Of a stretch of 32,000 nucleotides of DNA, positions 13,724-30,417 are shown piece after piece; the first letter of the stretch is position 1; each line of letters starts with the position of its first letter. The notes beneath the pieces were generated by a model. That model did not search any database and had not been told where the DNA came from. It saw nothing but the letters and a program-made list of their open reading frames with translations. A program made the position numbers and the translations under genes. The DNA comes from Paramicrosporidium saccamoebae KSL3 (lineage: Eukaryota > Fungi > Cryptomycota), in contig MTSL01000050.1 of the NCBI GenBank assembly GCA_002794465.1, forward strand, positions 43,077 to 75,076, written 5' to 3'.

Positions 13724-14941
13724 TTATTCTTTTCGCTCTGCAGACTGAATTGCCGAGAGCGCATCTAAGGGCGAATTCTTGAACTGGATAAAATGGCCCT
13801 GTATTTCGGCTGGCGAGCGTTGCAGCGGGGCCACTGCTTCGGCAAAACGTGCTGCTAGATGGGGGTGGTTGGGATAGAATCGAGAAAACATTCGCTGCAC
13901 CTGGTCCTGTGTTGCCCGTCCAATGTATTCCTGTACATCCACTCGACCGGGTCGAATCAATGCGGGGTCCAATCGGTCGTAATGATTGGTTGTCATGAAA
14001 ATGATGCGTTCCTCAGAAGAGGCGACTCCATCAAGCGCATTCAATAGTCCACTAAAGGTGAGCTTTCCGTGCGGCCGATCGGGACAGTTCATGGCCGAAT
14101 CAATGTCTTCCAGGAGCAATATCGATCTCTCCGGTAGAACATTGAGTAGATGATTTAAGCGATCATCAGACAGAGCCACTTCGCTTAGATTCAGCAGGCA
14201 GATGCTGTAGTCCAGTTCACTGGCTAGTGCTTGGATGAAACTGCTCTTTCCCCCACCAGGCGGACCATGGAGCAAATAGCCGCGTCGGTAGGGAATTCCC
14301 CGATCAAGATACCATTGTCCCGAGTCGAGAAATTCACGCACATCCGATACCAGTGCCTCTCTGACTCTCCCCTCAAAGATCACCGAATCCAATGTCCGTT
14401 TCCTCCGGGGATTCCCAAAGGGTCGCCATTCGGCTGCCCAACTCGTGTAGATGACCAACTTGCCCAGCTCCTGCTTGGCTGCCTGGGCCTGGGCCTCAGC
14501 CAACAGACTTGTGATGAATTCGGGCCGGCGTCCAATTGTGCTCAGTGTGATGGTCTCAAATGGGATTCCCGTAGTAATGTCCATGAGGGCAGATTTCTCG
14601 CGTTCTCGATTCACCTTGATCCAGGCGCCTTGCCACCGGAGATAATGTACACCGGGTGCAGGACTGAGACTCGTTGTCCCCGTAGTGCGGGCTATCTTTG
14701 CATTAAGTGTGAAATGCGAGCCGCTCAGCAGTGCCTGTTTCGTGAGCCATTGTACCATCCATCCATATGCGGGATCCTTGGAGGTCACCTCTACCGTTGT
14801 CAAATAACGTCTCTGGACTAAATACAGCGCCTGTGAAACACCCCGTCGTAGCGCTGCGAATCCAGCGCCCACTCCTAGCAACCCGAATCCGGCGCTAAAG
14901 TACGGATTGTCATGCAGAAGGGATGCTATAAGGTCCGACAT
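13724..14941 (-). CDS. BCS1: Mitochondrial AAA chaperone BCS1 (Rieske protein insertion into complex III), 405 aa
   Basis: NPYFSAGFGLLGVG, WAAEWRPFGNPRRKRTLDSV, YRRGYLLHGPPGGGKSS, LLEDID, MTTNH, LDPALIRPGRVD. Confidence 0.96.
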   Translation of the reverse strand: MSDLIASLLHDNPYFSAGFGLLGVGAGFAALRRGVSQALYLVQRRYLTTVEVTSKDPAYGWMVQWLTKQALLSGSHFTLNAKIARTTGTTSLSPAPGVHYLRWQGAWIKVNREREKSALMDITTGIPFETITLSTIGRRPEFITSLLAEAQAQAAKQELGKLVIYTSWAAEWRPFGNPRRKRTLDSVIFEGRVREALVSDVREFLDSGQWYLDRGIPYRRGYLLHGPPGGGKSSFIQALASELDYSICLLNLSEVALSDDRLNHLLNVLPERSILLLEDIDSAMNCPDRPHGKLTFSGLLNALDGVASSEERIIFMTTNHYDRLDPALIRPGRVDVQEYIGRATQDQVQRMFSRFYPNHPHLAARFAEAVAPLQRSPAEIQGHFIQFKNSPLDALSAIQSAERKE

Positions 14942-14967: not shown

Positions 14968-17042
14968 ATGAATACTATGTTGGCTGGTCCGCATTCCCCA
15001 CCGCCCGAGTCATTGAACTTGTACCTTGGCACAGGCGCTGATGAATAGATATGTGACAGGCGAGGGATTCTATTTTGAACCAAATTACGTGATTCCGGTA
15101 AACACCAAGCCGACGTTGCAAATTGCAAGGCCGGATGGGACGATTCGAGTCAACGAACCTGTGTCCTTTGCATTGCCCTCTCGTCCGCAGCGCACAGTCT
15201 ATGGCATATTGGGAATGATTCAGCTCTTATCAGGCATTCTTTTAGCCAGTCGCTCATCATTAGGTCCTTATCTTATTGTAATCACCGAGCGAAAATTGGC
15301 TTGCCGATTCCTCGGCCACTACATCTGGAAAGTGACTGGCTCGGATATCCTTCCATGCGGCAACGGCACTAATGGCCTGGACTCTCAGCAGCGCGCTGAC
15401 GAAGACAAGTTTGTGGAATTGCTCAAGACATTTCTGGCTTCAGACTGGATTTACTACTCTTCAACATACGATCTGACTCGTAGCCTTCAGTCCGAGGTTA
15501 CTTCCAGACACGAAAAAAGCTTCCTTCGGGCCAACTTGCGTTTTGTTGTCAACCGGTTTATTGCGGCTCCCTTCATACAGGTGCTGGAACAACGCACTGA
15601 TACCCGGTTGGAGGACTTTTTAGTCTTTTGCATTGAAGGATGTACGTCTGGTGTTGGTGGCGTGATTTGTGTAGTTGTTGAACTTCAATCTTTGACAATT
15701 CACCAGAAAAAAGTTACATTTGGTGTCATTTCGAGACGATCAACGGGAAGAGTTGGTAGAGACCACCAATAGCACTGATATTGTAGGTACAAGATATCAC
15801 TCTCGAGGAATTGACGATAAGGGAAATGTTTCCAATTTTGTGGAAACGGAGCAGATTGTGCTTGTGGACGACGATGTTGCCAGTTTTGTGCAGATCCGTG
15901 GTTCTATTCCGCTGTTTTGGAGACAGAACATTAACATTCGATACAAGCCGCCCTTTGAGTTTTACAACCATGCAAGCATGACAAGCGTGTTTGAGGCGCA
16001 TTTCAAAAGATTGCTGGAAGACTATGGACAAGTGACGGCAGTGAATCTGGTGAACCACCGTGGATGGGAGGGGGAACTAGCCAAAATGTTTGCTAAACAA
16101 GCGCGAGAATTTTCCGATCCCAAGATGAATTATGTGCCGTTTGATTTTAACAAGCAGTGTCCTCGAATGCAATGGGATCGGGTTAGTATTCTCCTTGATC
16201 AGATTGAAGGCGAAATGAGTCAGCAAGGCTGGTTTACAGGAAGACTTGAGCGTCCCCATGGAGATGGACAACTTTCCTTTACTCAAATTTCTCAAAAACA
16301 GAACGGAGTCGTTCGTACAAACTGCATCGACTGTCTTGATCGAACCAACCTGGTCCAAGGATACCTTGGCCGTCGCATCTTGACGCTTCAACTCTGCCAT
16401 TTTGGAGTTCTTGACAAGACTGAGACGGTGCAAGATTGTCCCGAGTTGGAGATGCTTTTTAAACAGAGTACAAAGAGTTGGAATTATTAATTGTTCATAG
16501 TTTGGGCCGACAATGGAGACGCTGTTAGTCGACAATATTCAGGGACGGGAGCGTTGAAAGCAGACTTTACTAGGACGGGACGACGCACCAAAATGGGCTT
16601 GGTGGCTGATGGTGTCAACTCGATGATGAGATTTTTCCTCAACAACTTTACAGATGGAAAACGCCAGGACGCCATGGATTTATTCTATGGGCACTATACA
16701 GTTCGCCTGGACAACTATTACTCTCCATTCATATATCGATTCGATTACCAACTCCTCGTCTCACCAGCAATTATGGTCGCCAGTTTCCTTGTCATGTTCT
16801 ATCTTTTGCTCACTTCCAGTCTCTCAGCCGGCACCCGTCTCTTTATGACATTGTTCGTGACGTTCATCTTTCTTTTTGCCACCATGGTGTTCTTCAATGA
16901 TGGTGTACGCTATGTGCAGTATCCTAGGTTGCGACCACCGCCTGTGGCAGCATATGCCCGTCCCTGGGCCTCGGCGCTTGCTGATAAACAGAGGAAGCTA
17001 TTCAATGCCATTGATCCGTCCCGAAAAGTTCACGTGATCTAG
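14968..17042 (+). CDS. SAC1: Phosphoinositide phosphatase SAC1, ~639 aa; exons 14968-15020, 15049-15233, 15264-15641, 15675-15755, 15787-16467, 16501-17042
   Basis: ESLNLYVTGEGFYFEP N-terminus, RVGTRYHSRGID, NFVETEQI, QIRGSIPLFW, catalytic RTNCIDCLDRTN, IWADNGD, GTGALK, two C-terminal TM helices. Spliced length 1920 nt is a multiple of 3. The start could be 14977. Confidence 0.93.
15021..15048 (+). other. SAC1 intron 1, 28 nt
   Basis: GTACCT...CTGAT-GAATAG. Joins SLNL to YVTG in frame. Confidence 0.82.
15234..15263 (+). other. SAC1 intron 2, 30 nt, non-canonical GC-AG, stop-free and in frame
   Basis: CAG|GCATTC...CTCAT-CATTAG|G. Removal converts LLSG-ILLASRSSLG-PYLIVIT to LLSGPYLIVIT, collinear with Sac1 orthologs. 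Confidence 0.7.
15642..15674 (+). other. SAC1 intron 3, 33 nt, stop-free and in frame
   Basis: GTACGT...GTGAT-TTGTGTAG. Removal restores CIEGFVE. Confidence 0.8.
15756..15786 (+). other. SAC1 intron 4, 31 nt
   Basis: GTAGAG...CTGAT-ATTGTAG. Restores RVGTRY. Confidence 0.9.
16468..16500 (+). other. SAC1 intron 5, 33 nt, contains an in-frame TAA
   Basis: GTACAA...TTAAT-TGTTCATAG. Restores FKQIWADNGD. Confidence 0.9.
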
Positions 17043-17114
17043 TTGTATGTGTATTTGAAGTAATAAATAGTGGTAAAGTTACTGCGTCCACAATGTCTAG
17101 GTTATCTAGTGGAT

Positions 17115-18884
17115 TTACCATGCAAGTGTTACAAAATTGTCGCTGTACATACTTAAAAGATCCTGAAATTTCAGAATCAGCGCTACAATTACCACAAGAA
17201 TCACAGCCGCATTTTCCAAATTGCGGGGTTCTCGATGCAACGCAATAGTCGAGGCATAGTGATGTATTCGATTCAACTCAACAGACGAAGCACAGGCTCC
17301 CTTCTTACCAATCTCTAGGAATGCTGGTATAGAATCCATGAGTGGGCTGTCCAAGTCATCTCTGTCGGGTACGCAGCCCCACATCTTTGCATACTGCCTA
17401 TGTTTGTAAAAGGTCCAGTCCAACTTGTATTCCTCGTCAGTCCTACGCACACACGACTCGTAATCAAAGTCAGTGGATTTCCCAAACAGCGCTTCCCACT
17501 CAAAGTAGTTACGACACTCTCCCCAATACCCATCATGGCTCCGATTGTCAAACAGCAGCCATTTCTTTGTCGGTGCGCGAATCGATTCGAAAAGGGACCA
17601 TGCTGGCATATAGGCGGCGTTGAGATCCATCCTGCTCGCCATTATATAAATGGCAGTCTTGTGAGTAGTGGCTGGATACTCCTCAGAGAGTTTACGCTCG
17701 TTCAGGAAGGGATTCAGGAGTTTCCAATCTCGGTAATACACTTCCGGATAATACACTCCCGGGTGTAGGTCGGTGTGATCAGGGAGTGGTTCAGGTGCAG
17801 CACCCTTTGGGAAATCCTGGTACTTTATATCAATCAAGATAACAGAATTCACCAAAGAATTTATCCCAGGGACATCTTCATCGTTGACCGCTTGCAATGA
17901 GAAAGCCTCTATCATTGGCTGCAAGACTTTGGTACGATAATCTTCCGCATTGGTACACTTTTCGGTAGCCATAAGGAATGGGAGCAGGAGCTGCTGTGAC
18001 CTAAAGTCATTGCTTTCTATCGGCTCTCTTGAAGGAGTTAACAACCAATTATGCAGTATCCTTGAGATCTCGCGAGTACGTTCTCCCACTGTGCCTGTGA
18101 GCTTGCTCCCCAACTTGTCATGAAACATCTTGGTGCAGTCGTTGTAATACTCCTTACCCAAGTTCCAAACTGCCGAGTTCATGGACTCATAAACATTGCC
18201 TCCCATCTTACGGCGACAAAACTTGTCTTTGGCACATATTTCAGCCAGGCCAACCAGGCTCCTTTCATGCTCCCCTCCTGAAATTGGAGGAACACCTCCG
18301 AGAAAGACACTATCAAATATATTGGGAGTTAGTTGCACAACATGGTGGGCCCATTGAGCACCATACGAAAACCCGTGCAAAACAATTCGGGCTGAGGAGC
18401 CCACTTTCGATCGTATTGCCATGCCGAGCATGGACACATCTAAGGCTGCATTAGTCATGATCAAGTCTCGAACATCGCAGTCTCTACTCTTAACTGCCTT
18501 TGAGAGCGCATAATGGTTAGCCTTTAGTACAGTCCCTTTTAACGGGAACCCTCCCGAACGACCCAGCCCTCTGTGGTCAACGAGATACGCAGCGACAGGC
18601 CCACCATACTTTCTAATCAACCGAATCGCATTATTAGCTTCACCATCCCCATCGCATCCAGGACCACCGGCAAGTAGAATTACATGGACCTCCGGGCAAC
18701 TACCAGGTTTGATATATCGTTCAACATACAGCGAAAATTGTTTTCCCAGTGGTCTGTCATAATCGGAAGGTACATTTACTCTACCACTATGTACACCAAG
18801 TCCCTCGACCGAACAGCCTTCTCTAGTGCATGGTCCCCATTTTACTGTAGGATTCAACGCAGATAATTTGAGCTCGCGGCCCAT
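17115..18884 (-). CDS. Alpha/beta-hydrolase (S33/TAP-like serine hydrolase), copy 1, 589 aa
   Basis: LAGGPG, YLVDHRGLGRSG, GFSYG (Ser), SRMD (Asp), NRSHDG (His), C-terminal hydrophobic segment. Confidence 0.85.
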   Translation of the reverse strand: MGRELKLSALNPTVKWGPCTREGCSVEGLGVHSGRVNVPSDYDRPLGKQFSLYVERYIKPGSCPEVHVILLAGGPGCDGDGEANNAIRLIRKYGGPVAAYLVDHRGLGRSGGFPLKGTVLKANHYALSKAVKSRDCDVRDLIMTNAALDVSMLGMAIRSKVGSSARIVLHGFSYGAQWAHHVVQLTPNIFDSVFLGGVPPISGGEHERSLVGLAEICAKDKFCRRKMGGNVYESMNSAVWNLGKEYYNDCTKMFHDKLGSKLTGTVGERTREISRILHNWLLTPSREPIESNDFRSQQLLLPFLMATEKCTNAEDYRTKVLQPMIEAFSLQAVNDEDVPGINSLVNSVILIDIKYQDFPKGAAPEPLPDHTDLHPGVYYPEVYYRDWKLLNPFLNERKLSEEYPATTHKTAIYIMASRMDLNAAYMPAWSLFESIRAPTKKWLLFDNRSHDGYWGECRNYFEWEALFGKSTDFDYESCVRRTDEEYKLDWTFYKHRQYAKMWGCVPDRDDLDSPLMDSIPAFLEIGKKGACASSVELNRIHHYASTIALHREPRNLENAAVILVVIVALILKFQDLLSMYSDNFVTLAW

Positions 18885-19007
18885 TTAGTCCAAACAGCCA
18901 GGGATTTATTTCAAAGGGCGCTCCATAAACATTACTGTAAGAATATAATGTATCTACAGAGCAGGGATAGCGGGTCTTTGGATACATGACGACTTTAATG
19001 AAACGTA

Positions 19008-19285
19008 CATCTCTTAATAGGATTATTTGTAATGCTCATTCTCGTCTTTGCCATTATGCTATTCTTCAATGATTATATATGCATGCCATGTGCAGTATTT
19101 CAGGTCACGGCCTCCGCCTGTGGCGGCAGATGCCCGTCCCTGGGCCTTGGCACTTACTGATAAACAACGAAAGCTGTTCAATGCTATCGATCCACCCAGT
19201 AAGATCACATGATCCGATCGTATGTGCATTTGAAGTAATATAGAGTGATGAACAGCCTCTTGCTGCGTTTAACATGTCTAGGTTG
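19008..19285 (+). pseudogene. Decayed copy of SAC1 last-exon 3' end and 3' UTR (spacer 1)
   Basis: e.g. GCCTGTGGCGGCAGATGCCCGTCCCTGGGCCTTGGCACTTACTGATAAACA vs SAC1 GCCTGTGGCAGCATATGCCCGTCCCTGGGCCTCGGCGCTTGCTGATAAACA. Frameshifted. Confidence 0.9.
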
Positions 19286-19313
19286 TATATATTGGGCTTG
19301 TCAAAGTTTATAA

Positions 19314-21002
19314 TTAGGATGGACCCTGAAATTTCAAGAACACCATTGCAATCAATAAAAAGATTACAAAAGAAGTATTCAGAGGACTATATTTTCGATC
19401 CAACTCGGCAGGCGAAGCATGGACCCCCATCTCGCCCATCTCTAGGAATACTGGTATAGGATCCATGAATGGGCCGTCCAAGTCATTGCTGTCAGGTACG
19501 CAGTCCCACATTTGTGCGTACTTGTCATGCTCGGAAAAGGTCCAATCCAACTCATATACCTTTTCAGTCCTACGGACGCATGACTCGAAATCAAAGCCAG
19601 TGGATTTTCCAAAAAGAGCCTCCCACTCAAAGTAGTCATGGCATTCTCCCCAATACCCATCGTGCCACCGATTTTCGAACAGCAGCCATTTCTTTATCGG
19701 AGCGGCAATCAATTCGAAAAGGGACCATGCTGGCATATAAGAGGTGACAAGATCCATTTTGCTCGCCATCATATAGATTGCAGTCTTATGAGTAACGGCC
19801 GGGTGTTCCTTGGAAAGCTTGCGGCCCATCAGGAACGGGCTTAGAAGTTTCCATCGTTGGTGATACCATTCCGGATAATACACTTCCGGATGTAGGTCTA
19901 TGTAATCGAAGGGTGGTTCAGGCGTGCCGTTTGAGAAATCCCGATAGTCCACATCAATCAGGATAACAGAATTCACTACATCGTTCAACTCATCGTCATT
20001 TGATTCTTGCAGTGAGAGGATTTCTAGTATTGGCGACAAGACTTTGGTACGATATTCAAGCGCGTTGGTGCACTTTTCAGTAGCCATCAGGAGCGGAAGC
20101 AAGAGCTGCTGTGGCCTGAAATTATTGCTTTCGCACAATTTCCCCAAGGAATTTGTCAGCAGCTCATCCAACGCCTCGGAGATTTCGCGAGTACGCTCCC
20201 CTATTGTGCCTGTGAGTTTGTTTCCCAGCTTGCCATGAAACATCTTGTTGCATTCATTGTAGTATTCTTTACCCAATTTCCAAACTGCAGAGTTCATAGA
20301 CTTGTAAACATTGCCTCCCATCTTGCGGCGACAAAACTCGTCTTTGGCACACACCTCAGCCAGACCAACGAAACTATCTTTGTGCTCCACTCCTGAAACT
20401 GCAGGGACACCCCCGAGAAAGGCACTGTCGAATATGTTGGGGGTCAACTGCACGACATGGTGGGCCCATTGAGCACCATACGAAAACCCATGCAGAACAA
20501 TCCGGGCTGAGGTGTTTAATTCCGCTCGTATTGCCATGGCAAGCATGGACACATCCAAAGCTGCGTTAGTCATGGTCAAATCTTGAACATGAAAAGCACC
20601 ATCTTCAAATGATTTTGAAAGTGTATCGTGACTGGCCTTTAATACAGTACCCTCTAACAAAAACTTTCCCGAACGACCTAGCCCTCGGTGGTCAACGAGA
20701 TATGCAGCGACGGACCCGCCATACCCTCTAACCAACCGAGCCGCATGGCTTTGTTGATTCTTCCCATCATAACCAGGACCGCCGGCAAGTATTACTACAT
20801 GGACTTTTGGGTGACTACCACCTGGTTTGGTGTATCGTTCGACATATAGTGAGAATAGATTTTCTGATGGTTTATCGTAGTCTGATGGCACCGTTACTCT
20901 GCCCTTATGGACATCAAGTCCATTGACGTAACAGTCTTTTCTATTGCATGGCCTCCATTCAACTGTAGGATTCAAGACCGATAGTTTGGGCTCATGGTCC
21001 AT
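19314..21002 (-). CDS. Alpha/beta-hydrolase copy 2, 562 aa
   Basis: GGPG, DHRGLGRSG, GFSYG, SKMD, NRWHDG, hydrophobic tail. Confidence 0.85.
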   Translation of the reverse strand: MDHEPKLSVLNPTVEWRPCNRKDCYVNGLDVHKGRVTVPSDYDKPSENLFSLYVERYTKPGGSHPKVHVVILAGGPGYDGKNQQSHAARLVRGYGGSVAAYLVDHRGLGRSGKFLLEGTVLKASHDTLSKSFEDGAFHVQDLTMTNAALDVSMLAMAIRAELNTSARIVLHGFSYGAQWAHHVVQLTPNIFDSAFLGGVPAVSGVEHKDSFVGLAEVCAKDEFCRRKMGGNVYKSMNSAVWKLGKEYYNECNKMFHGKLGNKLTGTIGERTREISEALDELLTNSLGKLCESNNFRPQQLLLPLLMATEKCTNALEYRTKVLSPILEILSLQESNDDELNDVVNSVILIDVDYRDFSNGTPEPPFDYIDLHPEVYYPEWYHQRWKLLSPFLMGRKLSKEHPAVTHKTAIYMMASKMDLVTSYMPAWSLFELIAAPIKKWLLFENRWHDGYWGECHDYFEWEALFGKSTGFDFESCVRRTEKVYELDWTFSEHDKYAQMWDCVPDSNDLDGPFMDPIPVFLEMGEMGVHASPAELDRKYSPLNTSFVIFLLIAMVFLKFQGPS

Positions 21003-21249
21003 TTAACTCCGGCGGCCAGGGATTTGCTTCAGGGCGCACCATAAAAATTAATATGAAAAACACCATCTAGGGAGTAAGGATAAAAGATCTTTAGACGCCT
21101 CACAATTAAGGTGATTGTTGCCATCAATTTTAGTGCAATAACAATTAAATCATCGGCTCCCTGTCTCACTTTTAACAACGACAGCCAAGCTTTTCGTAAT
21201 ATTCCATCTTTGGTTTACTTTAGGTTTCACAGTTAGCACATGCCTCTGA

Positions 21250-21505
21250 ATGATATTGCTCGTGGTGTTCATCCTCCTCTTTATCACCATAATATACTAT
21301 ACGTGCAGTAACCCAGGCTGCGGCTTCCATCTGTGGCAGCATATGCTCGTCCCTGGGTCTCTGCGCCCGCTAGCAGACAAAGGAAGCTATTCAATTCAAT
21401 CGATCCGTTCTAAAAGTTCACGCAATCTAATCTTATGTGCAGGTTAAGTAATAAATAATGGAGCACAGTTCCTTGTTACTGCGCTCCTAAAGTCTAGATT
21501 GTCTA
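21250..21505 (+). pseudogene. Decayed SAC1 3' fragment (spacer 2)
   Basis: CTGTGGCAGCATATGCTCGTCCCTGGG...AGGAAGCTATTCAAT...AAAAGTTCACG...GTAATAAATA matches SAC1 ~16850-17105. Confidence 0.88.
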
Positions 21506-21538
21506 TATTGAAATTGTCACGCGGGCAGTACAAACTGG

Positions 21539-23263
21539 TCATAATCCATGTTGCGATGAAGACGAAATCTTCAATAGCAACATTACAACCATCAAAAGGA
21601 TTACAAAAGTACCATCCAGAGGGCGATATTCCCGATTCAACTTGACAGATGAGGCATAGATTCCCATCCTATTAATCTCTAAAAACACCGGCACAGGGTT
21701 TATGAGTGGACCGTCCAAGTCATTTCTGTCAGGTACGCAGTCCCACATCTTTGCATACTTGTCATTCTTGGAAAAGGTCCAATCCAACTTGTATTTCCTG
21801 TCAGTCCTACGCACACATGATTCGAAATCAAGGCCGGTGTGTCTCCCAAAAAGAGCCTCCCGCTCAAAGTGGTCAGAACATTCCCCTTCGTATCCATCAG
21901 GATGCCCGCGATTGTCAAACAGCAGCCATTTCTTTATCGGAGCATCAATCAAGTTAAAGAGGGACCATGCTGGCATGTAAGTGGTGTTGAGGTCCATCTT
22001 GCTTGCCATCATATAGATGGCCGTCTTCTTAGTGATAGCTGGATGCTCCTTGGAGAGTTTGCGGTTCATCAGGAACGGGCGTAGGAGCTCCCATCGTTGG
22101 TAATACCGTTCCGGATAGTACACTTCCGGATGTAGGTCTGTGTGATTGAAGGGTGGTTCAGGTATACCGTTTGAGAAATCTTGATAATCTACATCAATCC
22201 GAATAACCGAGTTGACTAAATCACTCCAATCATGAATATTGCAATCACCGGATATATCATTCTTTGGTTCTTGAATTGAGAGAATCTCTAGTATTGGCGA
22301 CAAGACTTTGATATGATATTCAAGCGCGTTGGTGCAAGTTTCAGTAGCCATCAGGAAGGGAAGCAAAAGCTGCTGTGGCCTGAAATCATTGCTTTCATCT
22401 AGCCTCTCTAAAGAATTTGTCAGCAGCTCATGCAATGCCTCGGAGATTCCGCGAGTATGCCTCCCTATTGTGCCTGTGAGTTTGCTCCCCAGCTTGCCAT
22501 GAAACATCTTGGTGCATTCGTTGTAGTATTCCTTTCCCAATTTCCAAACTGCAGAGTTCATAGATTTGTAAACATTGCCTCCCATCTTGCGGCGACAAAA
22601 CTCGTCTTTGGCGCACACCTCGGCCAGGCCAATCAAACTATCTTTGTGCTTAGCTCCTGAAATTGAAGGGACGCCTCCGAGAAAGGCACTGTCGAATATG
22701 TTGGGGGTCAGTTGCACGACATGGTGGGCCCATTGAGCACCATATGAGAACCCACGTAAAACAATCCGGGCTGAGGAGCCTACTTTTGATCGTATTGCCA
22801 TAGCGAGCATAGAAACATCCAATGCCGCATTAGTCATGATCAAGTCTCGAATGTCAAAAGCGCTGCCTTCGAATGCTCTTGAAAGTGTATCATGACTAGC
22901 CATTAATACAGCGTCCTCTAATGGGAACTCTCCCGAGCCTCCTAGTCCTCTGTGGTCAATGAGATATGTAGCAATAGACCCCCCATACTCTTTAACCAAC
23001 TGAACTGCCAGGAGTTGCTGACCCGTCCCACTGGAGCCAGGACCACCGGCAAGTATAATTACATGGACCTCCGGGCGAATACCAAGTTTGGTGTATCGCT
23101 CGACGTACAGCGAAAACCGTTTTCCCAGTGGTCTGTCATAATCTGAAGGCACATTTACTTTACCACTATGTACACCAAGTCCCTCGACCGAGCAGCCTTC
23201 TCTAGTGCATGGTCTCCATTTTACCGCAGGATTCAAAGCAGATAGCTTGAGCTCGTGGCCCAT
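21539..23263 (-). CDS. Alpha/beta-hydrolase copy 3, 574 aa
   Basis: GGPG, DHRGLGGSG, GFSYG, SKMD, NRGHPDG, hydrophobic tail. Confidence 0.85.
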   Translation of the reverse strand: MGHELKLSALNPAVKWRPCTREGCSVEGLGVHSGKVNVPSDYDRPLGKRFSLYVERYTKLGIRPEVHVIILAGGPGSSGTGQQLLAVQLVKEYGGSIATYLIDHRGLGGSGEFPLEDAVLMASHDTLSRAFEGSAFDIRDLIMTNAALDVSMLAMAIRSKVGSSARIVLRGFSYGAQWAHHVVQLTPNIFDSAFLGGVPSISGAKHKDSLIGLAEVCAKDEFCRRKMGGNVYKSMNSAVWKLGKEYYNECTKMFHGKLGSKLTGTIGRHTRGISEALHELLTNSLERLDESNDFRPQQLLLPFLMATETCTNALEYHIKVLSPILEILSIQEPKNDISGDCNIHDWSDLVNSVIRIDVDYQDFSNGIPEPPFNHTDLHPEVYYPERYYQRWELLRPFLMNRKLSKEHPAITKKTAIYMMASKMDLNTTYMPAWSLFNLIDAPIKKWLLFDNRGHPDGYEGECSDHFEREALFGRHTGLDFESCVRRTDRKYKLDWTFSKNDKYAKMWDCVPDRNDLDGPLINPVPVFLEINRMGIYASSVKLNREYRPLDGTFVILLMVVMLLLKISSSSQHGL

Positions 23264-23380
23264 TTAGCCCAAACAGCCGGGGATTTATTCCAAAGGGCGC
23301 TCCATAAACATTGCTGTAAGGATATAATGCATCCACAGAGTGGGGATAGCGGGTCTTTAGACACCCCACAGCTCGAATAA

Positions 23381-23740
23381 CCATTTCCATCAATTGGGCT
23401 ACCTATTCTTTGTCTCATTACTAATCATAGCCGCCAATTTTCTTGTCATACTCTATCTTTTGCTTACTTCTAGTTTCACAATCGGTATCTGTCTCTGAAA
23501 TGGCATTATTTGCAATGTTCTTCTTCACTATCAGGGCGTAACCTAGATATAGTATCCCAGGTTGAAGCCTCCGCCTGAGGCAGCACATGTCCGTCCATGG
23601 ACCTTGACACTTGCTGCTAAACAGAAGAAGTTGTTTAATGCCATTGATTCGTCCCAAAAAGCTTACGTGGTTTAATTGCACGTGTGCTTGGAATAGTGGC
23701 GAGCAGTTTCCTGTTGCTTTGTTCACAATGTCTGGGTTGT
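23381..23740 (+). pseudogene. Decayed SAC1 3' fragment, long type (spacer 3)
   Basis: CTTGTCATACTCTATCTTTTGCTTACTTCTAGT vs SAC1 CTTGTCATGTTCTATCTTTTGCTCACTTCCAGT. Homology extends from ~16730 to ~17105 of SAC1. Confidence 0.88.
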
Positions 23741-23786
23741 CGATTCGATTTGCCGTATGGGCAGTATAAATTTTCGCATCGCAGGC

Positions 23787-25499
23787 CTAGAACGGACTTG
23801 AGATTATCAGAACCAGCATTGCAAATACCAAAAACATCACCAAAGCATTGTTTGAAGAGCGGCATATTAGATCCAACTCGGCAGGCGAGGCATAAACTCC
23901 CCGATCACCAATCTCTAGGAATACCGGTACAGGGTCCATTAATGGGCCGTCCAAGTCATTTCTGTCAGGTACACAGTCCCACATTTGTGCATAATTTCTA
24001 TGACTGGAAAAGGTCCAGTCCAACTCATATACCTTGTCAGTCCTACGAACACACGACTCAAAATCAAAGCCAGTGGATTTTCCAAACAACGCCTCCCACT
24101 CAAAGTAGTCACGACACTCTCCCCAATATCCATCATGGCTCCGATTGTCGAACAGCAGCCATTTCTTTGTCGGAGTACCAACCAAGTTGAAAAGAGACCA
24201 TGCTGGCATGTAAGGGGTAATAAAATCCGCCTTGCTCGCCATTATATAAATATTAGTTATACGGGTATTGGCTGGATGCTCCTCAGAGAGCTTACGACCC
24301 TTCAGGAACGGTCCTAAGAGCTTCCATTTCCGGTAATAAACTTCTGGATAGTGCACTTCCGGATGTAGGTCCGTGTGATCGGAGAGCGGGTCAGGTGCGC
24401 CCTTTGGGAAATCTCTATGACACACATCAAGCTGAATAACACAATTCACTATGTAATTCTTCCCAGGAATAGTATCGCCACTGGCTGTATAATCATTCGG
24501 TTCTTGCAATGAGAGCGCCTCTATTATCGGCTGCAAAACTTTGGTACGATATTCTGCCGCATTGGTACACTTTTCGGTGGCCATTAGAAATGGGAGCAGG
24601 AGCTGCTGTGACCTAAAATTATTTCTTCCTTTCAGGTTTTTTGAAGAATTAGCCAACCATTTGTGTAGTATCCTTGAGATCTCGCGAGTACGCTCCCCAA
24701 CTGTGCCTGTTAGGTTGATTCCCAGCTCACCATGAAACATTTTGATGCATTCGTTGTAGTATTCTTTACCCAATTTCCAAACCGCAGAGTTCATAGACTC
24801 ATAAACATCGCCTCCCATCTTGCGACGACAAAAATCGTCCTTGGCACATATTTCAGCCAGGCCAGTTAAACTGTCTTTGGGCTCCACTCCTGAGATTGGA
24901 GGAGCACCTCCGAGAAAGGCACTGTCGAATAGATTGGGAGTTAGTTGCACGGCATGATGGGCCCACTGGGCGCCATAAGAAAACCCACGCAAAACAATCC
25001 TGGCTGAGGTGGTTAGTTCCGCTCGTATTGCCATGGCAAGCATGGACACATCCAACGCCGCATTAGTCATGATCAAGTCTCGAATATCAAAAGCACTGCC
25101 GTCAAATGCTTTTGAAAGTGTATCAAGGTTGAAATCTGATACCCCTCCCTCTAACGAAAACTCTCCCGAGCCTCCTAGTCCTCTGTGGTCAATGGTATAA
25201 GCAGCAATAGACCCGCCATACTCGCTAACCAGCCGAATCGCATGATGACGTTCTGTCTTCCCATCGTGGCCAGGTCCACCGGCAAGAAGAATCACGTGGA
25301 CTTTTGGGTGACTACCACCTGGTTTGGTATATCGTTCAATGTACAGCGAAAATTGCTTTTCTGATGGCTCGTCATAGTCTGACGGCACGTTTACTTTACC
25401 GCTATGTATGTCAAGCCCATTGACATGATAGTCTTTTCTAGTGCACGGCCCCCACTTAACTGTAGGATTCAAAGCAGATAGTATGGGCTCATGGCCCAT
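23787..25499 (-). CDS. Alpha/beta-hydrolase copy 4, 570 aa
   Basis: GGPG, YTIDHRGLGGSG, GFSYG, SKAD, NRSHDG, hydrophobic tail. Confidence 0.85.
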   Translation of the reverse strand: MGHEPILSALNPTVKWGPCTRKDYHVNGLDIHSGKVNVPSDYDEPSEKQFSLYIERYTKPGGSHPKVHVILLAGGPGHDGKTERHHAIRLVSEYGGSIAAYTIDHRGLGGSGEFSLEGGVSDFNLDTLSKAFDGSAFDIRDLIMTNAALDVSMLAMAIRAELTTSARIVLRGFSYGAQWAHHAVQLTPNLFDSAFLGGAPPISGVEPKDSLTGLAEICAKDDFCRRKMGGDVYESMNSAVWKLGKEYYNECIKMFHGELGINLTGTVGERTREISRILHKWLANSSKNLKGRNNFRSQQLLLPFLMATEKCTNAAEYRTKVLQPIIEALSLQEPNDYTASGDTIPGKNYIVNCVIQLDVCHRDFPKGAPDPLSDHTDLHPEVHYPEVYYRKWKLLGPFLKGRKLSEEHPANTRITNIYIMASKADFITPYMPAWSLFNLVGTPTKKWLLFDNRSHDGYWGECRDYFEWEALFGKSTGFDFESCVRRTDKVYELDWTFSSHRNYAQMWDCVPDRNDLDGPLMDPVPVFLEIGDRGVYASPAELDLICRSSNNALVMFLVFAMLVLIISSPF

Positions 25500-25620
25500 T
25501 TAACTCCGATGGCCAGGGCTCTACTTCAAAAGGCGCTTCATAGACATTAATGGGAGTATATTACATTCACAGAGTAGGGATAAAGGGGCCTTTAGTCACC
25601 TCATAGCTTGAATAAATCAT

Positions 25621-25880
25621 CCGTCTTTTAATGGCATTATTTGCAATTTTCCTCCCCCTTGCCACCATGGTTTTATTGGATAACGATGCACGCTACGCGC
25701 AATATCCCCAGGTGGCAGCACATGTCCGTCCCTGGGCCCCGGCTTTTGCTGATAAGTATAGAGAGCTGTTGAAGGTCATTATCCACCCAGAAAATACGGG
25801 ATAACCTGTATGGGATGCTAAACCAGACCCTACTGTTTACCAGCCTCTTGTTGCCGTGTCCATAGTGTCTAAGCTATCTG
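25621..25880 (+). pseudogene. Decayed SAC1 3' fragment (spacer 4)
   Basis: TTGCCACCATGGT, ACGCTA, GTGGCAGCACATGTCCGTCCCTGGGCCCCGGCTTTTGCTGATAA all match SAC1. Confidence 0.85.
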
Positions 25881-25936
25881 TAAGATCCTCCGTGCAGACA
25901 GTATAAAAATATCGCCGTGCATACTTAAAACAGGCC

Positions 25937-27637
25937 TTAAAATTTTAGAAGCAGCACTACAACTACCACAAGAATAATAGGCCCATTTTTCAAAATGCGG
26001 TATTCTCCATAAGAATTGGTGGCCGGGGCATAGACTCCCATCTCACCAATCTCTAGGAATGTTGATAAAGAGTCCCTAAATGGGCCATCCAAGTCATTTC
26101 TGTCGGGTACACAGTCCCACATTTGTGCATAATTTCTATGACTGGAAAAGGTCCAGTCCAACTCATATACCTTGTCAGTCCTACGGACGCACGACTCGAA
26201 ATCAAAGCTAGTGGACTTTCCAAAAAGAGCCTCCCTCTCGAGATAGTCATGGCATTCTCCCCAATATCCATCATGCCACCGATTGTCGAAAAGCAGCCAT
26301 TTCTTTATCGGAGCGTCAATCAAGTTAAAAAGAGACCACGCTGGCATGTAAGTGGTGTTGAGGTCCATCTTGCTCGCCATCATATATATGGCAGTCCTAT
26401 GAGTAATAGCTGGATGCTCCTTGGAGAGCTTGCGATCCTTCAAGAACGAATATAAGAGGTTCCATTTTTGGTAATACCACTCCGGATAACACACTGACGG
26501 ATGTAGGTCTGTGTGATCAGAGAGTGGCTCAGGCGCACCCTTTGGGAAATCCTGGTAGTCCATGCCAATCCGAACCACAGAATTTACTAAATCATTCAAC
26601 TCATGAAGACTACAGTCGCTGGATGAACGTCCATCTGGTCTTTGCGATGAAAGGGTTTCTATTATCGGCTGCAAGACTTTGGTACGATAATCTTCCACAT
26701 TGGTACACTTTTCGGTAGCCATAAGGAATGGGAGCAAGAGTTGCTGTGACCTAAAATTATTCCTCTCTTTCAGTTCCATTGAAGGATTGGCCAGCCAATT
26801 ATACAGTATCCTTGAGATCTCGCGGGTACGTTCCCCTACTGTGCCTGTGAGTTTGCTTCCCAGCTCACCATGAAACATCTTGGTGCATTCGTTGTAGTCT
26901 TCCTTACCCAAGTTCCAAACTGCAGAGTTCATGGACTCATAAACATCGCCTCCCATCTTGCGACGACAAAAATCGTCTTTGGCGCACACCTCAGCCAGGC
27001 CAATCAAATTATTTCTGTGCTCCATTCCTGGAATTGAAGGAACACATCCGAGAAAGGCACTGTCAAATATGTTGGGGGTCAGTTGCACGGCATGATGGGC
27101 CCATTGGGCGCCATAAGAAAACCCACGCAAAACAATCCTGGCTGAGGAGCCTACTTCCGTTCGTATTGCCATGGCGAGCACGGAAACATCCAACGCCGCA
27201 TTAGTCATGATCAGGTCTCGAATGTCAAAAGCACTGCCTTCAAATGCTTTTGAAAGTACATCATGGCTGGCCTTTAATACAGTACCCTCTAACAAAAACT
27301 TTCCCGAGCGTCCTAGTCCTCGATGGTCAACGAGATACGCAGCGACAGACCCACCATATTTTGTAATCAACCGAATTGCATGGCTTTGTTGACTCTTTCC
27401 ATCATAACCAGGACCACCGGCAAGTATAATTACATGGACTTTTGGGCGACTACCACCCGGTTTGGTGTATCGCTCGACATATAGTGAAAATAGATTTTCT
27501 GAGGGTTTATCGTAGTCTGATGGTACAGTTACTCTTCCCTTATGTACATCGAGCCCCTCAACAGAGCAATCTTTTCTAGTGCACAGTCTCCATTCAACTG
27601 TGGGATTCAAGACAGATAGTTCGGGCTCATGATCCAT
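25937..27637 (-). CDS. Alpha/beta-hydrolase copy 5, 566 aa
   Basis: GGPG, DHRGLGRSG, GFSYG, SKMD, NRWHDG, hydrophobic tail. Confidence 0.85.
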   Translation of the reverse strand: MDHEPELSVLNPTVEWRLCTRKDCSVEGLDVHKGRVTVPSDYDKPSENLFSLYVERYTKPGGSRPKVHVIILAGGPGYDGKSQQSHAIRLITKYGGSVAAYLVDHRGLGRSGKFLLEGTVLKASHDVLSKAFEGSAFDIRDLIMTNAALDVSVLAMAIRTEVGSSARIVLRGFSYGAQWAHHAVQLTPNIFDSAFLGCVPSIPGMEHRNNLIGLAEVCAKDDFCRRKMGGDVYESMNSAVWNLGKEDYNECTKMFHGELGSKLTGTVGERTREISRILYNWLANPSMELKERNNFRSQQLLLPFLMATEKCTNVEDYRTKVLQPIIETLSSQRPDGRSSSDCSLHELNDLVNSVVRIGMDYQDFPKGAPEPLSDHTDLHPSVCYPEWYYQKWNLLYSFLKDRKLSKEHPAITHRTAIYMMASKMDLNTTYMPAWSLFNLIDAPIKKWLLFDNRWHDGYWGECHDYLEREALFGKSTSFDFESCVRRTDKVYELDWTFSSHRNYAQMWDCVPDRNDLDGPFRDSLSTFLEIGEMGVYAPATNSYGEYRILKNGPIILVVVVVLLLKF

Positions 27638-27757
27638 TTAACTCCGACGGCCAGGGGTTTACTCCAATGGGAGCTCCATAAACATTAATATGAAAAATTA
27701 ATATCTAAGGCGTAAGGATAAAGGATCCGTGGGCACCTCACAGCTTGAATAAATCAT

Positions 27758-27970
27758 CCGTCTCTTAATGACATTACTTGTAATGTTTATATTTGCCATT
27801 GTAGTGTTCTTAAATGACAGTGTGCGCTACATTTAGTACCCCCAGGCTGTGATCTCTGCTTGTGGCAGCATATGCTTGTCAATGAGCCTCGGCGCTTGCC
27901 GATAACTAGAGAAAGCTGTTCAGTGAAATTAATCCACCCAGGAAGATTGCGCAATGATTCGTATATGTGG
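27758..27970 (+). pseudogene. Decayed SAC1 3' fragment (spacer 5)
   Basis: CCGTCTCTTAATGACATT, TGTGGCAGCATATGC and GCCTCGGCGCTTGCCGATAA match SAC1. Confidence 0.85.
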
Positions 27971-28054
27971 TCGGAATAATGGCAACTAATCTCTTGTTCC
28001 TGTGCTCTCAAATAAGTTCATCTTGGGGTATTACAATCCTGTTGCGGTGCACTT

Positions 28055-29767
28055 TTAAAGTGGGCCCCAGATCTGCAGAACCAGCATGGCAAATACCAAA
28101 AAAATTACAAAAGCATCATTTGGGGAGCGGTGTATTCGATCCAACTCGGCCGGCAAAGCATAGACCCCCACCTCGCCAATTACTAGGAATGTTGGCAAAG
28201 AGTCCCTAAATGGGCCGTCCAAGTCATCTCTGTCGGGTACACAACCCCACATCTGTGCATACTTGCTATGCCTGGAAAAGGTCCAGTCCAGCTTTCGGTA
28301 TCGTTCATCAGTCCTACGCACGCATGACTCGAAATCAAAGCCAGTGGATTTCCCAAAAAGAGCCTCCCACTCAAAATAGTCATGGCACTCTCCCCAATAT
28401 CCATCATGGCTCCGATTTTCGAATAATAGCCATTTCTTTGTTGGCGCACGAATCGATTCGAAAAGAGACCATGCCGGCATGTAAGTGGTGTTGAGGTCCA
28501 TCTTGCTCGCCATCATATAAATTGCAGTTCTATGGGTGATGGCTGGATGTTCCTTGGAGAGTCTACGATCCATCAAGAACGGGTGTAAGAGCTTCCATCT
28601 TCGGTAATATGACTTTGGATATTGCACAGTCGGGTGTAAGTCGGTGTGATCAGAGAGCGGCTCAGGCGCACCGTTTGGAAAATCCCGATAGTTTACATCA
28701 ATCCTAATGGCAGAATTCACCACATCGTTCATCTCAGAGAAACCGCCATTGCTGACTACAGGGCTATTTGGCCCTTGAATCGAGAGGAGATCTAGTATTG
28801 GCTGCAATACCTTGGTACGATAATCTGATGCGTTGATACATTTTTCGGTGGCCATTAGAAATGGGAGCAAGAGCTGCTGTGGTCTAAAACTATTGCTTTC
28901 TTCCAGTCTTCCTAAAGTATTTGCCAGCAGCTCATGCAATGCTGTCGAAATATTGCGTGTACGTTCCCCCACTGTACCCATGAGTTTGCTTCCCAGCTCA
29001 CTATGAAACATTTTGGTGCATTCATTGTAGTATCCCTTACCCAGGTTCCAAACTGCACAGTTCATAGACTCATAAACGTCGCCTCCCATCTTACGGCGGC
29101 AAAACTCATCTTTGGCGCACACCTCAGCCAGGCCAATCAAACTATCTTTGTGCTTTACTCCTGAAACTGCAGGAACACCTCCGAGAAAGGCACTGTCAAA
29201 TATGTTGGGGGTCAACTGCACGACATGGTGGGCCCATTGAGCGCCATATGAGAACCCACGCAACACAATTCGGATCGAGGTGTCTAATCCCGCTCGTAAT
29301 GCCATGGCAAACATGGACACATCTAGGGCTGCATTAGTCATGGTCAGGTATCGAGTGTCAAAAGCTCTGCCCTCAAATGCTTTTGAAAGCGCGTCGGAGT
29401 TAGAATTTAATACATCCCCGTTTAACGAGAACTCTCCCGAGCGACCTAGACCTCTGTGGTCAATAGTATATGCAGCGATAGACCTACCATGACTATTAAC
29501 CAGCCGGAATGCATTGTGTCGTTCTGTCTTCCCGTCGGAGCCAGGACCACCGGCGAGAAGAATTACATGGACTTTGGGGTGACTATTAGGTTTGATGAGT
29601 CGTTCGACATACAGTGAAAATTTCTTTTCCAATGGTTTGTCGTAATCTGAAGGTACATCCACTCTGCCGCTGTGTACATCAAGTCCCTCAAAAAACCAGC
29701 CTTCTCTAGTGCATGGCCCCCATGTTACCGTAGGATTCAAAGCAGATAATTTGGGCCCATGGTCCAT
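28055..29767 (-). CDS. Alpha/beta-hydrolase copy 6, 570 aa
   Basis: GGPG, YTIDHRGLGRSG, GFSYG, SKMD, NRSHDG, hydrophobic tail. Confidence 0.85.
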   Translation of the reverse strand: MDHGPKLSALNPTVTWGPCTREGWFFEGLDVHSGRVDVPSDYDKPLEKKFSLYVERLIKPNSHPKVHVILLAGGPGSDGKTERHNAFRLVNSHGRSIAAYTIDHRGLGRSGEFSLNGDVLNSNSDALSKAFEGRAFDTRYLTMTNAALDVSMFAMALRAGLDTSIRIVLRGFSYGAQWAHHVVQLTPNIFDSAFLGGVPAVSGVKHKDSLIGLAEVCAKDEFCRRKMGGDVYESMNCAVWNLGKGYYNECTKMFHSELGSKLMGTVGERTRNISTALHELLANTLGRLEESNSFRPQQLLLPFLMATEKCINASDYRTKVLQPILDLLSIQGPNSPVVSNGGFSEMNDVVNSAIRIDVNYRDFPNGAPEPLSDHTDLHPTVQYPKSYYRRWKLLHPFLMDRRLSKEHPAITHRTAIYMMASKMDLNTTYMPAWSLFESIRAPTKKWLLFENRSHDGYWGECHDYFEWEALFGKSTGFDFESCVRRTDERYRKLDWTFSRHSKYAQMWGCVPDRDDLDGPFRDSLPTFLVIGEVGVYALPAELDRIHRSPNDAFVIFLVFAMLVLQIWGPL

Positions 29768-29825
29768 CTAACTCTACGGCCAGGGATCTATTTCAGAATG
29801 CACTCCATAGACATTAATGGGGGTG

Positions 29826-30015
29826 TGACGTAGAGGGTTAATTAGGCGTGTATTTGAGGATAGTTTCCTAGTTTGGAGAAGACCTAGTTGCTGGGTATTT
29901 GAGGACAGTGAGATGTGTATCCATAATATTATAGAATTAGCAGTGAACAAATCCCCCTTTCCGTCTCTTCCCGCTTGACAAAGTCCGTGATTTTATCCCC
30001 ACTACGCGGCAGATG
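29826..30015. other. ~190-nt insertion splitting the upstream block of hydrolase copy 6
   Basis: Its flanks are contiguous in copy 4 (25540-25610). Internal 11-nt direct repeat GTATTTGAGGA (29850, 29895). Imperfect 9-nt subterminal inverted repeat (29829-37 / 29998-30006). Boundaries approximate. Confidence 0.55.
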
Positions 30016-30076
30016 TATTACCTTCACAGAGTAGGGGTAAAGGGCCTTTAGATACCCCACAACTCGAATGAATCTT

Positions 30077-30300
30077 CCATCACTTTGACTACCGGCTTTT
30101 CTTTTTGTTATTAATAATGCCCGCCAGTTATCTGGCACATCTTATCTTCTGCTTACCTCCAGTCTTGCAGCTGGCATCTGTTTTGAATAGCAGTATTCCT
30201 GACCTTTATCTTTTTCTCTGTCACTATAGTGCTCTTAAATAACAGTATACGCTATGTGTAGTATTCCAGATTCAAGTCTCTGCTTGTGGCATCATACGCG
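30077..30300 (+). pseudogene. Decayed SAC1 3' fragment, long type (spacer 6)
   Basis: CGCCAGTT, TATCTTCTGCTTACCTCCAGTCTTGCAGCTGGCA and TACGCTATGTGTAGTAT match SAC1 ~16730-16960. Confidence 0.85.
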
Positions 30301-30417
30301 ATGAACCGTAGGTGTATTCAAAATCGTAATGGCCGGCCTCTTGCTGTTGTGCCTGCAATATCCGGGCTATCTACTGGACTTGCCATGCGGGTACTGTACA
30401 TTTGTCGCAATGCATCA

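Follow-up and report, generated by a model that had tools for sequence, protein, structure and literature searches.

The 3′ end of a SAC1 phosphoinositide phosphatase gene (positions ~16736–17114) reappears, identically oriented, in each of the six spacers of the neighboring hydrolase gene array, and it is likely that the locus is a lineage-specific tandem array formed by segmental duplication, in which the SAC1 tails are neutrally decaying passengers. Positions are those of the window, i.e., the whole 32,000-nt stretch of DNA that was analyzed. When 16600–17300 was compared with the window by blastn, we found same-strand copies at 19010–19420, 21138–21697, 23389–23894, 25618–26033, 27755–28163, and 30079–30299 (plus 30356–30525), with E-values of 1e-18 to 1e-64. 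Smith-Waterman alignment of SAC1 16736–17114 with each spacer gave scores of 64–131 (z = 43–88), where 300 dinucleotide shuffles gave ~11 ± 1.4 with a maximum of 18, and reverse-complement controls scored 10–12. Thus, the recurrence of the SAC1 tail in every spacer, which an earlier note on this DNA had described, stands far above shuffled controls.

The intact SAC1 gene is on the forward strand at 15041–17042 and encodes 645 aa in exons 15041–15755, 15787–16467, and 16501–17042, with two introns of 31 and 33 nt; these are the sole GT-AG exon sets that yield an open frame. The spliced model contains CIDCLDRT, which is the CX5R(T) catalytic motif, and the protein has 5,185 Syja_N (PF02383) homologues at E ≤ 1e-20, with PF02383 present in all of the best 120 of the 5,185 and many bearing the name SAC1. 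The product combines a Sac domain carrying the CX5R(T/S) motif with a C-terminal transmembrane anchor, its two hydrophobic helices being encoded at 16750–16900, and its C-terminus, ...YVQYPRLRPPPV.AYARPW...PSRKVHVI*, is kept in three relatives. The stop codon TAG at 17040–17042 is followed by a 72-nt 3′ UTR/intergenic stretch with AATAAA at 17062–17067, where the earlier note had placed it, and then by the stop of the convergent first hydrolase gene, so that the two stops are 72 nt apart. The source of the relics (16736–17114, forward strand) comprises the last 102 SAC1 codons (two TM helices plus the tail), the stop, and the 3′ UTR/intergenic stretch.

To the right of SAC1 are at least seven head-to-tail alpha/beta-hydrolase genes, all on the reverse strand, and the array's right end is beyond the window. 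The paralogs are H1 (17115–18884, 589 aa, an intact ORF with a GFSYG nucleophile motif), H2 (19314–21002, 562 aa), H3 (21539–23263, 574 aa), H4 (23787–25499, 570 aa), H5 (25937–27637, 566 aa), H6 (28055–29767, 570 aa), and H7 (30418–32000), which is open to the window end with its 5′ end outside the window; in an H7–H1 alignment, position 31995 is the equivalent of H1 position 18761. The paralogs are 68–71% identical in protein and are under purifying selection, with all ORFs intact and dN/dS at 0.20–0.33. A GxSxG nucleophile elbow and a Ser-Asp-His triad are conserved across the hydrolases: Ser173/Asp420/His450 along with G171, Y174, and G175 are invariant in a 16-sequence alignment, and triad and elbow are retained in all seven paralogs. 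Against solved structures, the family profile gives weak matches (E ~1e-4, residues 10–199 only) to 7sfm, 5bkm, 8e5w, and 5uoh, which are Mycobacterium tuberculosis Hip1/CaeA. The named relatives are a "putative exported protease" and a "Peptidase S33 tripeptidyl...", both from Paramicrosporidium saccamoebae.

The repeat unit of ~2.1–2.3 kb consists of the SAC1 tail, the convergent hydrolase, and a hydrolase 5′ flank of 117–135 bp with the motif CCCTACTCTGTRGATGYATTATAT. This flank is at 18885–19009 (reverse strand) in the first unit and has equivalents at 21003–21137, 23264–23388, 25500–25617, 27638–27754, and 29768–30078, the last with an insertion. Flank identity is 0.76–0.80 near the ATG, partly because of recent pairwise homogenization (U1/U3 and U2/U5; 100% bootstrap). 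The insertion is a private interspersed repeat of ~190 bp (29820–30008, forward strand) that the other five spacers lack; five or more copies with 81–98% identity to it occur on a Paramicrosporidium saccamoebae contig. The insertion postdates the amplification and is outside the original unit.

The six relics, all on the forward strand, fall into a full-length class (S2, S3, and S6) and a deletion class (S1, S4, and S5), and in every one of them the SAC1 reading frame is broken by one or more in-frame stops and one or more frameshifting indels, in agreement with the frameshifts and stops reported in the earlier note. S1 (19010–19313) aligns to SAC1 16838–17114 and carries a +4 insertion, a −1 frameshift, and an in-frame stop. 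S2 (21138–21538) has two in-frame stops, a 20-nt deletion, and a frameshift; S3 (23389–23786) has three in-frame stops and frameshifts; S4 is at 25618–25936; S5 (27755–28054) has four in-frame stops; and S6 (30079–30417) has an internal deletion of ~78 nt corresponding to SAC1 16958–17036. The coordinates proposed earlier were accurate to a few bases, except that the relic in spacer 2 starts at 21138 and not 21250 (~110 nt earlier) and that all relics extend further right, ending only where the next hydrolase gene has its stop codon, because the 72-nt SAC1 3′ UTR/intergenic stretch belongs to the copied unit. S1, S4, and S5 have in common a ~95–100-nt deletion of SAC1 16736–16829, and their spacers show no joint grouping by 5′-flank sequence. 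It is an odd coincidence that this deletion begins within a few nucleotides of the junction.

Both ends of the copied unit can be read from the spacers. The SAC1-side breakpoint, seen in S2, S3, and S6, is in the last exon, uncertain within ~16720–16736, and an anchored-extension test found no SAC1 homology to its left (p = 0.14–0.58). The hydrolase-side junction, ...CAGCTYGAATRA, is common to all six spacers, and the relics are collinear with the hydrolase 3′ end, as at the parental locus. The relics are thus homologous to part of a gene, in the same orientation, beside a collinear neighbor, and with one junction for all copies, and the earlier description of the amplified unit as the SAC1 3′ end plus the convergent hydrolase with one breakpoint in the last SAC1 exon is supported by the common junction and the lack of homology leftward.

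The relics have diverged about as far as unconstrained sites in the genes between them. Relic–relic identity is 0.60–0.64 vs. 0.655–0.668 at hydrolase four-fold sites, and K2P between relics is ~0.54 vs. a mean hydrolase dS of 0.68. Their mutation spectrum (ts/tv 3.0, GC→AT bias 2:1) is typical of unconstrained DNA, and derived changes fall on all three SAC1 codon positions (0.24/0.18/0.26); the changes of SAC1 itself are chiefly third-position (3/8/14). Former second codon positions in the relics show fewer changes (chi-square p = 0.02), which may come from the T-rich composition of those positions. With coding capacity lost and a neutral substitution pattern, the relics look, from sequence comparison, like neutral hitchhikers, i.e., partial gene duplicates. 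RIP of duplicated DNA was considered and rejected, since GC→AT changes are just 2-fold over AT→GC and the hydrolase copies are intact; relic GC is 0.42–0.47 vs. 0.455 in the source, without the AT enrichment that RIP would give. Relic lengths are 300–401 nt vs. 379 nt in the source, over ~0.3 substitutions per site, while other intergenic spacers within the window are 72–300 bp, and keeping this much DNA could be a sign that length or spacing is constrained. The best-conserved block, 16940–16969 (30 nt), has an identity of 0.77, a single window at the ~99th percentile of the four-fold-site null that loses significance once ~10 windows are corrected for; S6 lacks this block.

A tree of the relics against SAC1, as the earlier note had advised, yields only a star, in which two sites separate all relics from SAC1 and no split has more than eight supporting sites, and this star shape points to a burst of amplification. 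The idea of the relics as a near-neutral clock is sound in principle, but with a star tree and deep divergence (K2P ~0.54) the clock can give a single date but cannot order the branches. The hydrolase genes themselves are mosaics, with segment trees incompatible at 97–100% bootstrap and a Sawyer-type run test for exchange between copies giving a global P = 0.002–0.02 for three pairs. In a tandem duplication, the ancestral 3′ flank stays with the first copy and the ancestral 5′ flank with the last. The claim that copy 1 is ancestral therefore holds for its 3′ flank only, as its own upstream DNA beyond ~125 bp is a relic and recombination has made the paralogs mosaic. A relative with 85% nucleotide identity (L010) also has the hydrolase next to SAC1, but relatives whose SAC1 is 60–63% identical do not and have ORC/DAGK genes there instead. 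By comparison with L010, the amplification burst coincided with the divergence from that lineage or followed it shortly. SAC1 is the source and not the recipient because its C-terminus is conserved in orthologues from genomes without a hydrolase beside SAC1.

That the SAC1-tail copies reflect chance similarity or an assembly artifact has next to no probability: chance is refuted by the z of 43–88 over shuffles and E-values down to 1e-64, and copies that differ by 25–40%, with private indels and a private transposon insertion, are not producible by collapsed or duplicated reads, so that relics 60–75% alike make an artifact impossible. It is also very improbable that the relics entered pre-existing spacers later, through ectopic gene conversion with SAC1 as donor or through separate capture events. 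Such late entry would fit the two junction classes, full-length in S2/S3/S6 and from ~16830 in S1/S4/S5, as well as the coincidence of the class-A boundary with the junction and the conversion active among paralogs, but the hydrolase-side junction has the same sequence in all six spacers, every relic is continuous rightward from the SAC1 3′ UTR into the hydrolase 3′ end, and relic divergence matches hydrolase synonymous divergence. Furthermore, conversion can insert sequence only if the acceptor offers homology on the flanks, and every relic is nearest to SAC1 only because SAC1 evolves slowly.

We regard as unlikely the proposal that the relics are selected as terminator/poly(A) regions of the right-hand paralog, and maybe also as upstream promoter of the left-hand paralog, which has merely ~120 bp of native 5′ flank. 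The geometry invites this reading: with only 72 nt between the stops, H1 transcripts must terminate within the SAC1 3′ end or close to it, and all other paralogs have this DNA downstream of their stops. The fairly well kept relic lengths and the 0.77 identity of block 16940–16969 point the same way. However, the 70–100 nt next to each hydrolase stop are the least conserved in the whole unit (0.45–0.59 vs. a four-fold mean of 0.655), no AATAAA/ATTAAA/UAUAUA-type or UA-rich element is shared in the hydrolase sense across copies, no sense-strand element conserved above neutral follows the hydrolase stops, and the best-conserved block is missing in S6. The SAC1 AATAAA persists in one relic only (S2). 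On a related metagenomic contig (L013), two genes of this hydrolase family stand head to tail with 340 nt between them that lack SAC1 similarity, so tandem copies in the family can do without a relic. Nor does the presence of relics require selection, as they were copied along with the rest of the unit. With relics evolving at least as fast as four-fold sites, most diverged near the stops and carrying no conserved signal, the earlier suggestion that they were kept as terminator/poly(A) regions is not supported by sequence. It is rather improbable, too, that SAC1-derived DNA was exapted as the array's standard intergenic module, with housekeeping-gene coding sequence, read in antisense, forming the 3′ ends of one paralog's transcripts and providing upstream promoter context to its neighbor, and with the 300–400-nt length selected in a very compact genome while the sequence drifts.

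In the tandem duplication that we favor, with the SAC1 tails as neutral passengers, a primary event would have linked the last SAC1 exon (~16720–16736) to DNA ~120 bp upstream of the hydrolase start codon, giving a unit of ~2.27 kb with the SAC1 tail, the 72-nt convergent intergenic stretch, the hydrolase, and a short promoter stub. Unequal crossing-over between units would then have raised the number quickly to at least seven copies, and the hydrolase copies would have been kept by purifying selection as intact, predicted membrane-anchored serine hydrolases while also swapping segments through recombination or gene conversion. The SAC1 fragments, without promoter, start codon, and ~84% of the coding sequence, would never have been genes; as passengers ("partial duplicates"), they would have accumulated changes at a roughly neutral rate. 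With every relic lying between one paralog's stop and the next one's promoter stub, hydrolase transcription probably terminates within relic DNA, and sequence comparison gives no sign of selection preserving a particular relic sequence for termination.

As a record of tandem-array formation, the locus is clean enough for a textbook: the fossil of a neighboring gene fixes both founding breakpoints and shows that all copies come from one event, and the relics are a selection-free yardstick beside the still-functional parent sequence. Using L010 as outgroup dates the burst to approximately the split of two environmental lineages. The array is also a lineage-specific expansion of a predicted membrane-anchored Hip1-like serine hydrolase in an uncultured, early-diverging fungus-like organism. 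The family's only named relatives are in Paramicrosporidium (Rozellomycota), and the expansion may bear on the biology of this poorly known group.

"Gene relics" in yeast genomes were reportedly described by Lafontaine et al. in 2004. The relics described here are an ordinary by-product of tandem duplication in a well-preserved example, with no new element or mechanism. The array hydrolases resemble Hip1/CaeA (Rv2224c), which is peptidase S33/tripeptidyl-aminopeptidase-like, in the GxSYG elbow and invariant Ser/Asp/His, but the match is weak and covers the first ~190 residues, the N-terminal third only, and unlike Hip1/CaeA the array proteins have no N-terminal signal peptide and have a C-terminal hydrophobic anchor. 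Like tandemly arrayed (TAG) families shaped by unequal crossing-over and gene conversion, the array is a lineage-specific enzyme-family expansion of head-to-tail constant-length units, with purifying selection and mosaic units; unlike TAG families evolving in concert, it is old, stable, and without recent homogenization, its spacers having diverged almost to saturation. Small-scale duplication commonly produces partial duplicates (Katju 2012, PMC3449122), and as in these, a breakpoint within the neighboring gene left a promoterless truncated fragment that degenerates and marks the extent of the unit. Unlike typical partial duplicates, this fragment was carried through at least six further rounds and punctuates the whole array, and the relics are old (K2P ~0.54) yet alignable, with a slow-evolving intact parent at the array's edge.

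The 3′ end of SAC1 recurs on the same strand in the spacers between the hydrolase paralogs. When SAC1 16600-17300 is compared with the window by blastn, six same-strand copies start at 19010, 21138, 23389, 25618, 27755 and 30079 (E 1e-18 to 1e-64). Aligned by Smith-Waterman, SAC1 16736-17114 scores 64-131 with the six spacers (S1-S6), where dinucleotide shuffles score 11 ± 1.4 (z = 43-88) and reverse-complement controls score 10-12. Translated in the SAC1 register, all six relics contain in-frame stops and frameshifts. The recurrence and decay described in the earlier note are thus borne out, and its relic coordinates hold to within a few bases except for relic 2, whose true start is at 21138.

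From the spacer alignment, the repeat unit (2128-2324 bp) consists, in + strand order, of the hydrolase ATG, a 5′ flank of 117-135 nt that is conserved among copies, a junction (...CAGCTYGAATRA), SAC1-derived DNA, and the stop codon of the next hydrolase. The SAC1-derived part runs from ~16720-16736 through the stop and includes a 72-nt stretch of 3′ UTR/intergenic DNA. To the left of the junction, anchored extension of SAC1 homology is no better than shuffles (p = 0.14-0.58), so we place the SAC1 breakpoint in the last exon, just 5′ of the first transmembrane helix. The proposed unit, a SAC1 3′ end plus a convergent hydrolase with a breakpoint in the last SAC1 exon, is therefore matched by both the alignment and the anchored extension. 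A relic that extends further left was considered, as a local alignment links SAC1 16671-16695 with the hydrolase 5′ flank at ATG+12..+38 (score 14, p ~0.006), but given the p values of the anchored extension we regard this match as unproven. The likeness of this SAC1 segment to 18897-18922 and its equivalents is weak, same-strand and collinear (22/26 aligned positions). A deletion of ~100 nt that starts at the junction is common to S1, S4 and S5, and S6 alone has a 78-nt deletion and a ~190-bp insertion. The shared deletion begins within a few nucleotides of the duplication junction (19003-19012, 25610-25620 and 27747-27757); the three spacers that carry it fall in three 5′-flank types, the flanks pairing as S1/S3, S2/S5 and S4/S6. 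It reflects either a recombination breakpoint at the junction or a more complex origin of the deletion/junction class.

Relics match one another at 0.64 identity in what was once coding sequence and at 0.605 over 16836-17114 (K2P 0.54), and four-fold-site identity among the hydrolase paralogs is 0.655-0.668. SAC1-relic identity (0.72) is above relic-relic identity because SAC1 has hardly changed, with 3, 8 and 14 changes of its own at first, second and third codon positions, and the relics have changed at all three (0.24/0.18/0.26). The relic mutation spectrum is ordinary, and RIP-like hypermutation was rejected, as ts/tv is 3.0 and the GC->AT bias only 2:1, with no RIP signature. The top 30-nt relic block, 16940-16969 (identity 0.77), reaches about the 99th percentile of the four-fold-site null for a single window, is not significant across ~10 windows, and is deleted in S6. 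On this pattern the relics appear to behave like neutral DNA. Their position inside the duplicated unit accounts for their presence, and selective retention is unneeded as an explanation.

The earlier note had suggested that the relics were kept as terminator/poly(A) regions for each paralog. With no more than 72 nt between the SAC1 and H1 stops, hydrolase transcripts very probably end inside SAC1-derived DNA, judging by this geometry. However, the relics have diverged most (identity 0.45-0.59) in the stretch that directly follows the hydrolase stops (equivalents of 17040-17114), the hydrolase sense strand has no AATAAA, ATTAAA or UAUAUA-type element common to the relics, and the SAC1 AATAAA is retained in relic 2 alone. 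With divergence that looks neutral, the retention idea is not supported at the sequence level, though it could still hold at the RNA level.

The window is eukaryotic and dense in genes. Read from synteny with related contigs, the gene order begins with an ATG4-like peptidase gene, followed by an ABC transporter (9006-12905, +), a small gene, BCS1 (13724-14941, -) and SAC1 (exons 15041-15755, 15787-16467 and 16501-17042, +), whose 645-aa model has the catalytic motif CIDCLDRT; SAC1 homologues with Syja_N number in the thousands, many of them named SAC1. The SAC1 introns (15756-15786 and 16468-16500, GT...AG) are only 31 and 33 nt long, and the shortest spacers in the window are 99 bp (BCS1-SAC1, divergent) and 72 bp (SAC1-H1, convergent), which points to a very compact genome. 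Among the matches listed, the nearest BCS1 and SAC1 relatives are environmental sequences, and identity to named fungi is at most 56% for BCS1 and 41% for SAC1. These distances point to an uncultured, fungus-like source that diverged early. From SAC1 as far as the window end, the array genes lie on the - strand and encode an alpha/beta hydrolase of ~570 aa with the nucleophile motif GFSYG, invariant Ser173, Asp420 and His450, and a hydrophobic anchor at the C-terminus. Its family profile matches M. tuberculosis Hip1/CaeA structures (E ~1e-4), and the named proteins related to it are just two, both from Paramicrosporidium saccamoebae (36-42% identity). Pairwise dS among paralogs is 0.51-0.81 (mean 0.68) and dN/dS 0.20-0.33. 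An NCBIfam search with SAC1 and the hydrolase gave no match, as expected of a prokaryote-oriented library; neither Rfam nor tRNA scans gave a hit in the window or the S6 insertion, and profile and exact 36-mer scans of metagenome contigs for the remainder of the array found nothing. A GTG-initiated ORF of 168 codons (23684-24190, +), which begins within relic 3 and continues antisense across the 3′ portion of H4, is probably a chance antisense ORF.

Across BCS1 and SAC1, a metagenomic contig (L010) shares 85% nucleotide identity with the window. The 128 nt that follow the stop of SAC1 on this contig show homology to the window's intergenic stretch plus hydrolase 3′ end (p < 0.002) and on the opposite strand read ...KFKVTNV*, like the paralog tails, so the convergent SAC1-hydrolase adjacency is older than the L010 split. 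At 67 sites that differ between the SAC1 tails of the window and L010, the relic majority has the window state at 41, the L010 state at 23 and is tied at 3; the 41:23 split, only a modest departure from 50:50, dates the amplification to the L010 split or soon afterwards. Roughly 70% of window-lineage changes would have come after the duplication. Relatives with 60-63% identical SAC1 keep the upstream synteny and have ORC and DAGK genes, without the hydrolase, downstream of SAC1, so the adjacency is itself either lineage-specific or a feature that those relatives lost. All relatives compared conserve the SAC1 C-terminus, which makes SAC1 the donor and not the recipient of the relic sequence. 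Three contigs of one relative (L004, L005 and L006; SAC1 60% identical), from three separate sequencing runs, end at a common base 333 bp past the SAC1 stop, which suggests that a repeat, or some other feature that breaks assemblies, lies where the window has its array. On another metagenomic contig (L013, 985-1407), two genes of the same hydrolase family form a head-to-tail pair with a 340-nt spacer, the second gene beginning MGYERIISNLNPTVKWGPCT; tandem amplification of the family thus extends beyond the window's genome, and as this spacer has no similarity to SAC1, tandem copies function without a relic. The two Paramicrosporidium homologues are single-copy, dispersed and away from SAC1, and their synteny is therefore uninformative as an outgroup for polarity.

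The relic tree is a star in which only two sites set all relics apart from SAC1. A resolved tree was rejected, since splits conflict, each with at most eight supporting sites, and the top clade reaches 70% bootstrap. The array thus reached its present copy number quickly relative to the ~0.3 substitutions/site accumulated per relic since. The hydrolase units (U) are mosaics whose nearest neighbour varies along the unit: segment 17901-18300 groups (U2,U3) at 100% and (U1,U4,U5) at 97% bootstrap, segment 18651-18945 groups (U2,U5) and (U1,U3) at 100% each, and three pairs have a global P of 0.002-0.02 in a run test. With a star tree and mosaic units, the clock seen in the relics dates the burst but gives no order of duplications. 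In a tandem duplication, the old 3′ flank stays with the first copy and the old 5′ flank with the last copy. The region upstream of copy 1 is relic 1 past 125 bp, and this, together with the mosaicism, means that no single copy is the ancestor. Of the proposal that copy 1 sits in the ancestral position, the locus stands as ancestral, back to the L010 split, but copy 1 itself does not.

The private insertion in S6 (29820-30008) is an interspersed repeat whose termini read TGTGACGTAGAGG...TTATCCCCACTACGCGRCA, TG...CA like those of a solo LTR. It is 81-98% identical to at least five copies on a Paramicrosporidium saccamoebae contig (L001; including 1206-1427, 9018-9124, 9434-9533 and 11557-11723), some of which flank the hydrolase homologue of that species, and is the sole nucleotide-level match between that contig and the window. 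Because proteins shared by the two organisms are at most 42% identical, either the repeat is strongly conserved, or it has recently been mobile or passed from one lineage to another. The hydrolase 5′ flank was rejected as an old copy of it, as its local alignments to the element fall short of significance (p = 0.02-0.26) and involve another region of it. A 24-38-nt motif of that flank, CCCTACTCTGTRGATGYATTATAT, lies ~60-85 nt upstream of the ATG (18943-18966, 23322-23345 and 25556-25579, -) and also at 13004-13041 (+), in the convergent spacer that follows the ABC-transporter gene, where chance predicts zero matches; the motif may represent a promoter module that contains TATA, or else a small repeat.

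From these comparisons, we conclude that what recurs here is a partial duplicate of an adjacent gene, propagated along a tandem array. A literature search for a prior description of the locus or its organism found none. Partial duplicates are a frequent and well-known outcome of duplication (PMC3449122), and this locus is a neat, unusually legible case of a co-amplified one in an obscure lineage.
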